Position numbers and translations under genes: made by a program. This document shows, piece by piece, positions 30,158 to 33,720 of a stretch of DNA of 64,000 bases. The first letter of the stretch is position 1. Every line of letters begins with the position of its first letter. The stretch lies in the NCBI RefSeq assembly GCF_000006765.1, contig NC_002516.2; one strand, 5' to 3'. Source of the DNA: Pseudomonas aeruginosa PAO1 (GTDB taxonomy: Bacteria > Pseudomonadota > Gammaproteobacteria > Pseudomonadales > Pseudomonadaceae). The notes beneath the pieces are model-generated. The model was given only the letters and a program-made list of their open reading frames with translations. It did not search any database and was not told the DNA's origin.

Positions 30158-31456
30158 TCACAGGCTCTTCTCGAATACCTGCGAATTGCGCTGGAAGTTG
30201 TACAGCGAGGCCCGCGCCGCCGGTAGCCGTTCGACGCTGCTAGGCTGGAAGCCGCGCTCGCGGAACCAGTGCGCGGTCCGCGTGGTGAGCACGAACAGGG
30301 TCTTCAGGCCGAGTCCGCGCGCGCGCTCCTCGATCCGCTCCAGCAGTTCGTCGCCACGCCCGCCGTGGCGGTACTCCGGGTTGACCGCCAGACAGGCCAG
30401 CTCGCCCGCCTCGGAATCGGCGATCGGGTAGAGCGCGGCGCAGGCGATGATCAGCCCTTCGCGCTCGACGATGCTGAACTGTTCGATCTCGCGTTCCAGC
30501 ACCTCGCGGGAACGGCGTACCAGGATGCCCTGCTCTTCCAGCGGGCGGATCAGCTCGATCAGCCCGCCAACGTCCTCGATGCCCGCCTCGCGCAACTGCT
30601 CGAACTGCTCCTGGGCGACCAGGGTGCCGTTGCCGGTGCGGGTGAATAGCTCGCTGAGCAGCGCGCCGTCCTCGGTGTAGCTGACGATATGGCTGCGCTT
30701 GACCCCGGCCCGGCAGGCCTGCGCCGCGGCGTCCAGCAGCTCGGCCTGGTAGCTGTTGCCCAGCCGTTGCAGGTGCGCGGGCACCTGCTGCGGGCGCAGT
30801 TCGCGGACCAGTTTGCCGGATGCGTCCAGCAAGCCCTGTTCGGCGCCGTAGAGAATCAGCTTTTCCGCTTCCAGGTCGATGGCGGCGCGCATGGCCACGT
30901 CTTCACAGGCCAGGTTGAAGATTTCCCCGGTCGGCGAGTAGCCCAGCGGCGAGAGCAGAACGATGCTGCGCTCGTCGAGAAGGCGGCCAATACCCTTGCG
31001 GTCGATGCGACGGACCTCACCGGTATGGTGATAGTCGACACCCTCGACCACGCCGATCGGCCGCGCGGTGACCAGGTTGCCGCCAGCGACCCGCAGGCGC
31101 GCGCCCTGCATCGGCGAGGCGGCCATGTCCATCGACAGCCGCGCCTCGATGGCGATGCGCAGGCTACCCACGGCGTCGATGACGCACTCCAGGGTCGGTG
31201 CATCGGTCACTCGCAGGTCGCGGTGATAGCGCGGAGCCAGGCCGCGCGCGGCCAGGCGCGCCTCGATCTGCGGACGCGAACCGTGCACCAGCACCAGGCG
31301 CGCACCGAGGCTGTGGAGAAGGACTAGGTCGTGGACGATATTGCCGAAATTGGGATGCTCCACCCCTTCGCCGGGGAGCATGACCACGAAGGTGCGGTCC
31401 CGGTGCGAGTTGATGTAGGGCGAAGCGTGACGTAACCAGTTGACGTAGTCGGGCAT
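30158..31456 (-). CDS. argA: N-acetylglutamate synthase, 432 aa
   Basis: WLRHASPYINSHR, AAK domain, ELFTRTGNGT, C-terminal GNAT..RNSQVF. Confidence 0.96.
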   Translation of the reverse strand: MPDYVNWLRHASPYINSHRDRTFVVMLPGEGVEHPNFGNIVHDLVLLHSLGARLVLVHGSRPQIEARLAARGLAPRYHRDLRVTDAPTLECVIDAVGSLRIAIEARLSMDMAASPMQGARLRVAGGNLVTARPIGVVEGVDYHHTGEVRRIDRKGIGRLLDERSIVLLSPLGYSPTGEIFNLACEDVAMRAAIDLEAEKLILYGAEQGLLDASGKLVRELRPQQVPAHLQRLGNSYQAELLDAAAQACRAGVKRSHIVSYTEDGALLSELFTRTGNGTLVAQEQFEQLREAGIEDVGGLIELIRPLEEQGILVRRSREVLEREIEQFSIVEREGLIIACAALYPIADSEAGELACLAVNPEYRHGGRGDELLERIEERARGLGLKTLFVLTTRTAHWFRERGFQPSSVERLPAARASLYNFQRNSQVFEKSL

Positions 31457-31464
31457 GGTGGGGA

Positions 31465-31563
31465 AAGCCTGTCGTTTCGTGAGCGAGAGCAAAGCGTGAG
31501 CGGCCGGGACGGCCCGAAGGGCGCCGTTATCGTCGTCGCAGCAACATCGACAGGCTTCTCCTC
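31465..31563 (-). promoter_or_regulatory. argA leader: 10-bp complementary arms linking the leader-ORF spacer to the argA RBS region
   Basis: mRNA AAGCCTGTCG (31557-31548) is the exact reverse complement of CGACAGGCTT (31474-31465). Confidence 0.75.
31527..31547 (-). CDS. Putative argA leader peptide MLLRRR
   Basis: GAGGAG-N10-ATG TTG CTG CGA CGA CGA TAA; three tandem rare Arg codons, 91 nt upstream of the argA ATG. Confidence 0.75.
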   Translation of the reverse strand: MLLRRR

Positions 31564-31792
31564 ACTTTCTGGTTAACGAGACGGATGGATCACGCGCGAG
31601 TTTAAACCCTCGGCGGCCCCCCGGCCGCGGGATTCGACCATGGTACGGGGCCTGGGGCCGGAACGAACCGTTTTACCACTATTTTTGAAAAAAACTATCC
31701 GAAAACCCCGGTTAACTCGCACAGCGCTTTTTCGCTAGGCTGCCTCGTTCGCCGTGCCGTCCGGCGCGCAACCACGCGAACGAGGAAAATCC

Positions 31793-32494
31793 ATGAGCGA
31801 ATACTTCCATCACGTCCTGATCGGACTGCTCGCCGTGCTTCCGGTGGCCAACCCGCTGACCAGCGTCTCGCTACTGCTCGGCCTCGGCGGCAGCCTGCCG
31901 CCGGCGGAGCGCAACCGGCAGATATTCAAGGCCAGCCTCTACGTGGCGCTGATCATGCTGGTCAGCTTCTACGGCGGCAGCCTGGTGATGCAGGTGTTCG
32001 GCATCTCCATTCCCGGCCTGCGCATCGCCGGCGGGCTGATCGTCGCCTATATCGGTTTCACCATGCTGTTCCCCGCCACCACGCCGGACGAGACCGAAGT
32101 CCAGCACGACCTGCTGTCGGACGAGGAAAAGATCACCCCGCACTTCCGCGACCTGTCCTTCGTTCCGCTGGCCCTGCCGGGTACCGCGGGGCCGGGGACC
32201 ATCGCCCTGGTGGTCAGCTCGGCGTCGACGCTGCAATCCACCTACGGAAGCATTCCGCTGTTCATCCACCTCGCGGCGATCACCGTCACCCTGCTCACCG
32301 CGCTGATCTTCTGGATCGCCCTGCAAAGCTCCGGGCGCATCATGAAGTTCCTCGGCGAATCCGGGATCGACGCCATCTCGCGAGTGGTCGGCTTCCTGCT
32401 GGTGGCGATGGGCGTGCAGTTCGTCATCAACGGCGGCTTCGAGCTGGTCGCCGGCCACGCCGCGCTTCAGTCGGCGGCGGGCGTCAGGCAGTAA
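31793..32494 (+). CDS. MarC-family membrane protein, 233 aa
   Basis: VANPL, FGISIPGLRIAGG, PLALPGTAGPGTI, GFLLVAMGVQF. Confidence 0.9.
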   Translation: MSEYFHHVLIGLLAVLPVANPLTSVSLLLGLGGSLPPAERNRQIFKASLYVALIMLVSFYGGSLVMQVFGISIPGLRIAGGLIVAYIGFTMLFPATTPDETEVQHDLLSDEEKITPHFRDLSFVPLALPGTAGPGTIALVVSSASTLQSTYGSIPLFIHLAAITVTLLTALIFWIALQSSGRIMKFLGESGIDAISRVVGFLLVAMGVQFVINGGFELVAGHAALQSAAGVRQ

Positions 32495-33621
32495 TGCTGG
32501 ATCAGCCGGCGCAGCACGCCGACCATCGGTTCGATACGCGCCAGTTCGAGGTGCTCGTCGGGCTGGTGGGCACAGGCGATGTCGCCGGCACCGAGGACCA
32601 GGGTCTCGCTGCCCAGGCGCTGGAAGTACGGCGCCTCGGTACCGAACGCCACGGCCTCCGCGCGATGCCCGGTCAGGCGTTCGGCGACGCGTACCAGTTC
32701 GCTGTCCTGCGCCTGTTCGAACGGCGGCACGGCAGGGAACAGCGGCTGGTAGTCGATGCTCACCTGGTGCCGTTCGGCCAGCGGCCGCAGGCGCTGGCGG
32801 ATCGCCTCGCGCAACTGCTTAGGCTGCATGCCGGGTAGCGGGCGCAGGTCGAATTCCAGCGAACACTGGCCGCAGATGCGGTTGGGATTGTCGCCACCGT
32901 GGATGCAACCGAAGTTCAGGGTCGGCTGGGGCACGCTGAACTGCGGGTTGTTCCAGGCCCGCTGCCATTCCCCGCGCAGCGCCATCAGCTCGCCGATGGT
33001 CGCGTGCATGGCCTCCAGGGCGCTACGGCCGAGGTTCGGATCGGACGAATGGCCGCTCTGCCCGAGAATCTCGATGCGCTCCATCATCACCCCCTTGTGC
33101 AGGCGGATCGGCCGCAGGTTGGTCGGCTCGCCGATCACCGTGGCGCGACCCAGCGGTCGCCCGCTTTCGGCGAGGGCACGGGCGCCGGCCATCGAGCTTT
33201 CCTCGTCGCAGGTGGCGAGGATCATCAGCGGCTGGCGGAACGGCTGGTCGAGCAGCGGCAGCAAGGCCTCGATGGCCAGCGGGAAGAAGCCCTTCATGTC
33301 GCAACTGCCGAGGCCGTACCAGCGGCCGTCGCGCTCGTCCAGGCGCAGCGGATCGCTGCTCCACAGCGCTTCGTCGTAGGGCACGGTATCGGTGTGGCCG
33401 GCCAGCACCAGCCCGCCGGGACCGCTGCCGTAGCTGGCCAGCAGGTTGAACTTGCCCGGCGAGACTTCCCGGATCTCGCAGCGGAAGCCTAGATCGCCCA
33501 GCCAGGAGGCCAGCAGGTCGACCACCGGGCGGTTGGTCTGGTCCAGCTCGGGCTGGGTGCAACTGACGGAAGACGCGGCGATCAGCGCGCCGAACTGGTC
33601 TTTCAGAGACGGCAACGGCAT
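32467..33621 (-). CDS. argE: Acetylornithine deacetylase, 384 aa
   Basis: M20 motifs GHTDTVP, GSCDMKG, DEE, GEPT, AHQPDE. Confidence 0.94.
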   Translation of the reverse strand: MPLPSLKDQFGALIAASSVSCTQPELDQTNRPVVDLLASWLGDLGFRCEIREVSPGKFNLLASYGSGPGGLVLAGHTDTVPYDEALWSSDPLRLDERDGRWYGLGSCDMKGFFPLAIEALLPLLDQPFRQPLMILATCDEESSMAGARALAESGRPLGRATVIGEPTNLRPIRLHKGVMMERIEILGQSGHSSDPNLGRSALEAMHATIGELMALRGEWQRAWNNPQFSVPQPTLNFGCIHGGDNPNRICGQCSLEFDLRPLPGMQPKQLREAIRQRLRPLAERHQVSIDYQPLFPAVPPFEQAQDSELVRVAERLTGHRAEAVAFGTEAPYFQRLGSETLVLGAGDIACAHQPDEHLELARIEPMVGVLRRLIQHYCLTPAAD

Positions 33622-33720
33622 GGGACTCTCCACACGGATCGAGCCCCATCATGGCCTATCGCGGCAGTGGATAAAACCGTCCGTTCCGGTTCCGCCTGCG
33701 CCAGCCGACGAAGATCGCGC

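Follow-up and report, generated by a model that had tools for sequence, protein, structure and literature searches.

A tandem-CGA reading frame upstream of argA, probably a conserved arginyl-tRNA-sensing leader in the Pseudomonadaceae

Leader peptides of the classical kind, such as trpL, hisL, leuL, thrL, pheL and ilvL, are short open reading frames (ORFs) that are preceded by a Shine-Dalgarno (SD) sequence and lie just upstream of a biosynthetic gene. Arginine synthesis, by textbook account, is under the control of a repressor without attenuation, and in Pseudomonas the control of its first committed enzyme, encoded by argA, has been ascribed essentially to feedback inhibition. We know of no cognate-codon leader peptide for the genes of arginine biosynthesis, and full-text literature searches returned no description of a leader ORF for argA, several of the matches to 'argA' being the names of authors. 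This report concerns an upstream ORF (uORF) of a few codons, ending in tandem CGA arginine codons, that stands before argA in a stretch of 64,000 nucleotides from Pseudomonas aeruginosa PAO1 (NC_002516.2; the whole stretch is called the window below) and before argA in most other Pseudomonadaceae. Comparison of sequences and predicted RNA folds suggests that it is probably a conserved, so far undescribed leader ORF that senses arginyl-tRNA.

The uORF shares with the trpL and hisL class not only its SD and its position but also the tandem codons for the end product of the pathway, the use of a slow or starvation-sensitive codon, a peptide that otherwise drifts and a conservation that spans the genus. 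It differs in lacking a terminator/antiterminator pair and any conserved intrinsic terminator. Moreover, it is much shorter (4-8 codons), its regulatory codons are the very last, and it is usually intercistronic rather than at the 5' end of an operon. Another kinship is with ermC, cat and cmlA, in which stalling within a short leader ORF opens the helix that hides the downstream ribosome-binding site (RBS) and no terminator is needed; the anatomy predicted for the P. aeruginosa leader fits this arrangement exactly. The cysteine-responsive short ORFs of mycobacteria belong to the same kind of translational attenuation. Unlike in erm and cat, the stall proposed here would arise from scarce charged tRNA and not from an antibiotic, and the sequestering helix is missing from two or three of the Pseudomonas clades. 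By analogy, the argA element may join the sensor of a leader-peptide attenuator to an output of the ermC/cat type.

The closest functional precedent is orf34 (speFL) of speF in Salmonella and E. coli, where two consecutive Arg codons give a response to arginine via ribosome pausing and alternative mRNA folds, and where the output involves both Rho and sequestration of the RBS as well as sensitivity to RNase G (PMC6386406). The two elements are alike in presenting tandem Arg codons as a sensor of arginine, but orf34 has 34 codons, a conserved peptide domain that senses ornithine, internal Arg codons and a polyamine gene as its target. As in tnaC and mgtL, ribosome occupancy of the argA uORF could decide the access of Rho to a C-rich untranslated spacer, and the stall in tnaC is likewise at the end of the ORF; in P. 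aeruginosa, however, the sequence next to the stop is structured and G-rich, and the peptide is too short and variable for arrest. The arginine attenuator peptide of fungi (the arg-2/CPA1 uORF) also lies upstream of an arginine-pathway gene, whose translation it makes responsive to arginine. About 24 residues long and conserved in sequence, that peptide detects free arginine from within the exit tunnel and halts scanning ribosomes, whereas in the argA uORF it is the codon choice that is conserved and not the peptide. The hallmark of arrest peptides, a conserved peptide long enough for the exit tunnel, is lacking in these uORFs, which encode 4-8 residues with only the terminal RR in common.

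Conservation of the uORF and of its CGA codons

The comparison covered 81 argA loci of the Pseudomonadaceae, namely the window and 80 others from one scan of species-representative genomes, these relatives sharing 85-91% ArgA identity; L-numbers label the sampled loci. Three of the records (L004, L046 and L073) are titled Enterobacterales bacterium, Leclercia tamurae and Pantoea sp.; their ArgA identity of 86-91% and their Pseudomonas-type argE-uORF-argA loci indicate that the assemblies are probably mislabelled or contaminated. A uORF was scored where an SD was followed by an ATG or GTG start and 4-8 codons ending in CGA CGA, with or without one further CGA, CGC or AGC codon, and a stop.

Such a uORF lies directly before argA in 73 of the 81 loci. 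The original prediction, made from the P. aeruginosa sequence alone, had proposed an arginine-sensing leader peptide, and on alignment of the argA upstream regions its tandem Arg codons prove to be conserved across the family. Much else in the uORF changes from species to species: there are five lengths (4, 5, 6, 7 and 8 codons), two start codons (ATG and GTG) and three stops, TAA (55), TGA (14) and TAG (4). The peptides seen include MLLRRR, MFLRRR, MLMRRR, MPLRRR, MLRRR, MLRRS and VQRR, as well as VLQPQFRR, VKLPQLRR, VLRCLFRR, VTPSLFRR, VTASLFRR and VSPSLFRR, among which only the terminal RR is kept. What stays constant is the frame, the SD and the terminal CGA-CGA-stop. All 73 uORFs have a GGAG, GAGG or AGGA motif 5-12 nucleotides before the start, visible as a conserved block in a logo anchored on CGACGA; in the same logo the information content is about 2 bits per position over CGACGA and the stop, and 0.1-0.6 bits in the flanks. 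Arg-Arg stands immediately before the stop in 66 uORFs, the other seven having a third codon (CGC or AGC) in between. A peptide, length, start and stop that vary around a fixed frame, SD and CGA-CGA-stop are the signature expected of a translated regulatory ORF, and the alignment supports this reading, with the Arg codons as the functional part.

In the window and the flanks the arrangement is confined to this locus. The composite motif, consisting of an SD, a start, no more than eight codons, CGACGA and a stop, was scanned on both strands and occurs once in the window and nowhere in 313 kb x 2 strands of sequence flanking the sampled loci. When metagenomes were scanned for the strict MxxRRR* form, 50 matches came up, of which 20 are Pseudomonas-type argA leaders with the stop 67-78 nucleotides before ArgA; the remaining 30 are unrelated, a number expected by chance, and none of the 50 precedes any other gene of interest. 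When the ArgA tree is rooted at its midpoint, uORF-bearing species fall on either side of the root. The loci without it (L031, L048, L050, L054, L066, L068, L072 and L040) belong to one Stutzerimonas-type clade of seven species and to Azotobacter vinelandii, both nested among uORF-bearing lineages. Because the uORF occurs on both sides of the root and its absences are nested, the distribution implies an ancient origin followed by at least two losses.

The choice of codon is as striking as its position. CGA makes up 163 of the 166 Arg codons of the uORFs (98%), against 46 of 3463 (1.3%) in the adjacent argA coding sequences. Codon usage in the window was taken from 37 ORFs with a high GC content at third codon positions (high-GC3; 15,119 codons). 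In these, CGA accounts for 4.3% of Arg codons, or 3.6 per 1000, in agreement with the earlier statement that it is rare in this host, and an in-frame CGA-CGA pair is found once. The major Arg tRNA, tRNA-Arg(ICG), serves about 80% of the Arg codons in these ORFs. According to the theory of isoacceptor charging, the most-used tRNA is expected to lose most of its charging under limitation; since tRNA-Arg(ICG) carries this share of the demand, its charging should fall most when arginine is limiting. CGA is the codon read worst by tRNA-Arg(ICG), and Curran is reported to have described in 1995 that the A:I wobble is inefficient. In Salmonella, Chevance et al. found that CGA is decoded significantly more slowly than CGU or CGC by the same tRNA, even under rich conditions, and that Arg-Arg pairs containing CGA stall ribosomes in a leader-peptide reporter (PMC4046918).

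The P. aeruginosa leader and its predicted anti-RBS helix

The elements listed by the original prediction, that is the GAGGAG, the spacer behind it, the uORF, a hairpin, a C-rich tract, the arm with AGG and the argA ATG, could all be verified in place on the minus strand (Table 1). The uORF ATG lies 91 nucleotides upstream of the argA ATG and is thus out of frame with it, and the AGG of argA stands 11 nucleotides before its ATG. The spacer between the uORF and argA, about 69 nucleotides long, is largely base-paired in predicted folds, and between the uORF stop and argA its composition in P. aeruginosa is C 0.46 and G 0.24. A GTG at 31565, in frame with the uORF (31565-31527, minus strand), would yield VRRSLSMLLRRR, the rare Arg codons AGG AGA of which are the SD itself (GUG AGG AGA); it is probably not used as a start because there is no SD upstream of it. 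AGC CUG, however, keeps the frame that it has in the fluorescens-type uORF (..S-L-F-R-R), a hint that a longer ancestral uORF was shortened in P. aeruginosa.

Table 1. Positions of argA and of the elements of its leader in the window
Feature	Position	Strand	Evidence
argA, N-acetylglutamate synthase, 432 aa, presumed controlled gene	30158..31456	-	TIGR01890 match, E = 2e-212
P1 3' arm CGACAGGCTT (= CGACAGGCUU), with SD-like AGG of argA at 31470-31468	31465..31474	-	inverted repeat
C-rich, G-poor tract CUCACGCUUUGCUCUCGCUCAC, possible Rho utilisation (rut) site, partly P2 3' strand	31479..31500	-	sequence
Inner helix P2: GCGA.GACGA (including CGA codons) with UUG.UCUCGC	partner at 31496-31483	-	minimum free energy (MFE) fold
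Apical GC-rich hairpins, combined span	31502..31522	-	sequence and predicted folds
Hairpin GGCCG-UCC-CGGCC, overlapping the next	31514-31502	-	
Hairpin gCCCUUCGGGc (GCCC-UUCG-GGC)	31522-31512	-	
uORF ATG TTG CTG CGA CGA CGA TAA (MLLRRR*)	31527..31547	-	sequence and homologous uORFs
Three tandem CGA (Arg) codons, proposed sensing site; also 5' strand of P2	31530..31538	-	
P1 5' arm, the uORF SD-to-AUG spacer AAGCCTGTCG (= AAGCCUGUCG), 10 nt	31548..31557	-	inverted repeat with 31465-31474
uORF SD GAGGAG	31558..31563	-	read directly
TAAACT, -10 candidate, unsupported	31599..31604	-	sequence only

The helix P1, termed anti-RBS here, joins the spacer behind the uORF SD to the arm that covers the argA AGG. 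The perfect pairing claimed for these ten nucleotides holds: the arms are 100% complementary, and no other non-palindromic inverted repeat in 31420-31620 is as long. For each of the eight core pairs, the partition function of the folded leader gives a pairing probability of about 1.0, and the duplex beats 200 of 200 shuffles of its 3' window (z = -4.0). As the MFE of the leader as a whole is unremarkable (z = -0.82), the signal is that of one helix and not of overall foldedness. A 7-nucleotide perfect complement, CTGGTTA/TAACCAG, between 31569-31575 just 5' of the uORF SD and 31433-31439 within argA codons 6-8 (N-W-L), closes the entire leader in the MFE fold and may be due to chance.

The effect of a ribosome on this fold was assessed as the energy needed to open argA from -16 to +13, in the free leader and with a ribosome parked so that the first CGA is in its A site; for each of 73 leaders, 15 controls were made by shuffling the 29 nucleotides that the ribosome covers. 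This test took the place of an RNAduplex comparison of native with swapped species, which discriminates poorly in GC-rich sequence. In the window, the predicted opening cost drops from 16.0 kcal/mol in the free leader to 5.6 with the parked ribosome. A ribosome with the first CGA in its A site is predicted to abolish P1, whereas one at the stop codon lets P1 re-form. Over the 73 leaders the predicted relief has a mean of 3.2 and a median of 3.7 kcal/mol, against 0.36 (standard deviation 1.5) in the shuffled controls; a relief of 2 kcal/mol or more is predicted for 66% of the native leaders and 11% of the controls, and one of 4 kcal/mol or more for 44% and 3%, respectively. In 36 of the 73, it exceeds all 15 of the leader's own controls. 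The predicted partners of the argA site are found at -20 to -3 relative to the first terminal Arg codon, a stretch that a ribosome paused there would cover. Their sequence and register differ between clades: the fluorescens/putida lineage has the 5' strand of the helix inside the uORF itself, GCGUG at the uORF start pairing with YAUGC at the argA start and GCCUGU with ACAGGC, and other clades have yet other sequences and registers. A universal sequestration of the uORF's own initiation region was considered and rejected, the energies being indistinguishable from those of the controls (10.6 vs 10.2 kcal/mol).

Several observations weigh against a charging sensor that works through this helix. 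The RNAduplex comparison gave only a weak difference (-17.6 for native against -15.0, standard deviation 3.9, for swapped species). In the fluorescens/putida clade (37 sequences) there is one double change and no excess over controls on measures that count pairs; the pairs are nearly invariant, so that covariation is uninformative there. Among the nearest relatives of P. aeruginosa, the nitroreducens-type loci (L001-L004, L103, L109 and L125) have a 5' arm that is predicted to prefer a mid-leader copy of its partner, CAUCCGACAGAUUUCC, over the argA-proximal copy by 3.6 kcal/mol; this copy may act as a decoy or as part of a three-state switch, and L081 has a mid-leader copy of the 3' arm as well, CGACAGACUUCC. 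In two further near relatives, L092 and L110, the 5' arm carries a U-to-C change that is uncompensated at the argA site, and the arm is predicted to pair mid-leader. For both groups the parked ribosome gives about zero predicted relief at the argA site, as it does in the VKLPQLRR clade, where the partner of the 5' arm lies at -36..-27. UCGUC, a predicted partner of CGACGA in an inner helix, occurs in 24 of the 73 spacers where 7.8 would be expected (about 3-fold), and part of the invariance of CGACGA could thus be a matter of RNA pairing. Lastly, a scan of 31300-31950 for sigma-70 sites found no promoter: the TAAACT that had been put forward as a -10 candidate is there as a sequence, but it lacks a -35 to go with it.

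RNAalifold, applied to the MxxRRR-type (Type-A) leaders, detected no common long-range helix, because the 3' partner occupies non-homologous positions. Since the uORF is equally conserved in the clades with zero relief, a universal function of the uORF cannot rest on the anti-RBS helix alone. Overall, the helix stands up in P. aeruginosa, where the predicted fold hides the argA initiation region except when the first CGA is in the ribosomal A site, and is not borne out as a conserved, covarying element. By the predicted folds it is real and strong in P. aeruginosa, common elsewhere and not universal; the universal feature is the uORF.

Gene context and transcription signals

In nearly all other species argE lies directly upstream of argA on the same strand, and the uORF falls within the argE-argA spacer. 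The description of the element as a 5' leader is therefore not primarily correct; its usual place is between two cistrons. In the window, the order is argE (32470-33633, minus strand), a MarC-family gene (31793-32494, plus strand) and the uORF with argA. The inserted gene is assigned to the MarC-family NAAT transporters (NF008228, E = 1e-89), and its 3' end overlaps that of argE by about 25 nucleotides. In none of the other 80 loci are argE and argA separated, including the L081 lineage with the same 5' arm, so the insertion looks specific to P. aeruginosa. The uORF has remained beside argA despite it.

In some clades the uORF is physically joined to argE. In the mendocina/oleovorans group (L017, L020, L025, L027 and L032; at about 1411-1425 in L017), argE ends in frame with CGA CGA TGA (...HYCLTRSEDVQRR*), while an internal SD and GUG are kept; since the module is here the C-terminus of ArgE, every ribosome that finishes this protein decodes the tandem CGA. 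The argE stop overlaps the uORF start as GUGA at L008, L011, L038 and L058, four loci of the VKLP-type clade, so that translation must there extend as far as the overlap; at L078 the overlap is UGAUG. Overlap of a stop with a start is the classic arrangement for translational coupling, in this case from argE to the uORF. In the fused and overlapping clades, therefore, the uORF RNA belongs to an mRNA and is reached by ribosomes. An in-frame extension of 438 codons in L110 was discarded, as it is merely an open alternate frame and argE there ends in another frame.

The species without a uORF have argA 29-46 nucleotides after argE, with AAGGCUU at a normal SD distance. The related motif ACAGG(C/U)U is kept before argA in nearly all species, and the position of AAGGCUU in the uORF-less ones identifies it as the ancestral SD region of argA. 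A 2026 paper on P. aeruginosa argA gives the ribosome-binding site as AGGCTT-X8-ATG and places primers inside the uORF without commenting on it (PMC13637947).

As the original prediction held, the leader contains no intrinsic terminator. The only match in the scan is a terminator-like hairpin with a T-run (CCGGGGTTTTCGG ATAGTTTTTT) at 31699-31711, on the argA strand and upstream of the uORF, in the AT-rich intergenic region between marC and argA; no minus-strand gene ends just before it. Nor is a terminator conserved, a weak hairpin with a U-rich tail being found in merely 8 of 73 leaders. Most clades have a GC-rich hairpin without a U tail after the uORF stop. A model based on intrinsic termination was rejected, also for the fluorescens-type CAGCC...GGCUG with its run of U, where a stem of 5-7 bp would have to close a loop of 30-40 nucleotides. 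A search of Rfam 15 with positions 31000-32200 of the window and E-values up to 10 returned two chance matches far below threshold, and the same database gave nothing at gathering score for 13 representative loci. CGACGA as an operator of ArgR was not convincing either: it does not resemble the P. aeruginosa ArgR box, TGTCGC-N8-AA.

A working model, its rivals and what it would mean

The reading that we favour, with moderate confidence, is that the uORF is a translated leader ORF which reports the supply of charged tRNA-Arg(ICG) to argA, and that a stall within it frees the argA initiation site. A ribosome would start at the strong uORF SD, decode two or three CGA after 1-5 codons and terminate at once. 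With Arg-tRNA plentiful it would leave within a fraction of a second; in P. aeruginosa 31557-31548 could then pair with 31474-31465, the weak and distant SD of argA would be buried, and little ArgA would be made. With Arg-tRNA scarce the ribosome would wait, the first CGA in the A site, and shield the 5' arm and the inner CGACGA:UCGC helix, so that the argA initiation region would be single-stranded and could be loaded by 30S subunits. Any effect on transcription, such as Rho-dependent polarity on the C-rich spacer or on an untranslated argA, would be secondary to this translational switch. Rho is placed downstream of the translational event because a ribosome on the 5' arm would expose the C-rich strand, which is the wrong direction for Rho acting alone unless argA is translated. 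Translation of the uORF, stalling under arginine limitation, the direction of the regulation and a mechanism shared by all lineages are what we infer beyond the alignments. Translational attenuation is likely in P. aeruginosa and may not be general; the mechanism is probably not identical in every lineage.

The alternatives differ in what they ask of the CGA codons. The uORF could be a constitutive device for coupling or pausing, in which translation of the uORF or of the argE end melts the structure for an argA with a poor SD, and CGA prolongs the hold regardless of arginine. The intercistronic position of the element in most species would suit such a device, as would the GUGA and UGAUG overlaps, the in-frame argE fusion, the slowness of CGA even in rich conditions (PMC4046918) and the short argE-argA distance with a normally placed SD wherever the uORF is missing. 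Any rare codon would do for it, however, yet the regulatory codons are CGA with three exceptions, and AGA, AGG, AUA and CUA are never used; moreover, all 166 encode the end product of the pathway, whatever the lineage and on either side of the tree root. Pausing at a codon of the major Arg tRNA is, in addition, inevitably sensitive to charging, so that this explanation shades into the favoured one. By itself we consider it unlikely. Still further from what the alignments suggest is an ORF that is not translated at all, with the CGACGA-TAA block serving as an RNA or DNA motif, be it a strand of P2 or a binding site for a protein or small RNA. CGACGA does pair with downstream UCGUC, UUGUC or UCGC in many predicted folds, and the enrichment of UCGUC fits. 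On the other side, a correctly spaced SD, an in-frame ATG or GTG and an in-frame stop go with the block in 73 of 73 despite five lengths and three stops; the block is the end of the argE coding sequence in one clade, the start overlaps the argE stop in another, two thirds of the spacers have no UCGUC, and the block is unlike the ArgR box. We judge this explanation very improbable.

Two other proposals retain the translated uORF and change what follows from it. With Rho-dependent attenuation as the primary output, Rho would load on the C-rich spacer after the ribosome has left and terminate before or within argA, while a ribosome stalled at the end of the uORF would block it sterically, as in tnaC, or through a change of fold, as in mgtL. 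The spacer has more C than G in 71 of 73 species, with a mean C/G of 1.57 and 64% pyrimidine (in argA, C = G = 0.33), there is no conserved intrinsic terminator, and the Arg codons always abut the stop, like the stall site of tnaC; Rho could also account for the clades in which the argA site is not sequestered. The C-rich spacer is compatible with a rut site, yet the need to pair with the purine-rich SD region accounts for some of its pyrimidine content. The 20 nucleotides after the stop in the window are G-rich hairpins and not rut-like, the C-rich tract lies 27-50 nucleotides downstream, beyond the footprint of a stalled ribosome, and the C-rich strand is predicted to be more single-stranded with a ribosome on the 5' arm, which by itself would favour Rho under starvation. 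As the primary output, Rho appears a little less probable even than constitutive coupling. Free L-arginine might instead be sensed at termination, blocking release with peptidyl-tRNA-Arg in the P site and the stop in the A site, the arrested ribosome fixing a repressing fold or obstructing the leader, in the manner of TnaC with Trp, SpeFL with ornithine and the fungal arginine attenuator peptide. Arg-Arg directly before the stop in 66 of 73 uORFs is in keeping with this, and in the model P1 can form even though a ribosome still occupies the uORF at its stop codon. Against it stand a peptide of as few as four residues (VQRR) that is otherwise unconserved and in some species ends in RRS, the lack of a precedent for a drug-free sensor so short, and the near-exclusive use of CGA over the common CGC and CGG, which it leaves unexplained; it is the least probable of the explanations considered here.

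Sensing of charged tRNA-Arg(ICG) by a translated uORF accordingly remains the preferred reading. On a wider view, and at odds somewhat better than even, the element would be an ancient, genus-wide sensor of tRNA-Arg(ICG) charging, a CGA-CGA-stop ORF of 4-8 codons, placed between argE and argA or fused to the argE end, that tunes the first committed enzyme by attenuation at the level of translation without a terminator, and whose expression platform was rewired repeatedly from lineage to lineage. If the lineages without an anti-RBS helix use another read-out, be it Rho or an arrest by free arginine at the stop, there would be one sensor with several interchangeable outputs.

For practical work on P. 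aeruginosa, it is worth bearing in mind that constructs or primers starting 70 bp upstream of argA, as in PMC13637947, cut through the element and may alter the expression of argA in complementation. With its 4-8 codons and one helix, the leader could provide a small and tractable model of attenuation without a terminator, for which the natural variants, including fusion to argE, overlap with the argE stop, decoy arms and total loss, offer an evolutionary series of mutants. If the proposed reading is true, argA would have a second layer of control that reads charged tRNA rather than free arginine, and this would be the first such case found for an arginine biosynthetic gene of the Gammaproteobacteria.

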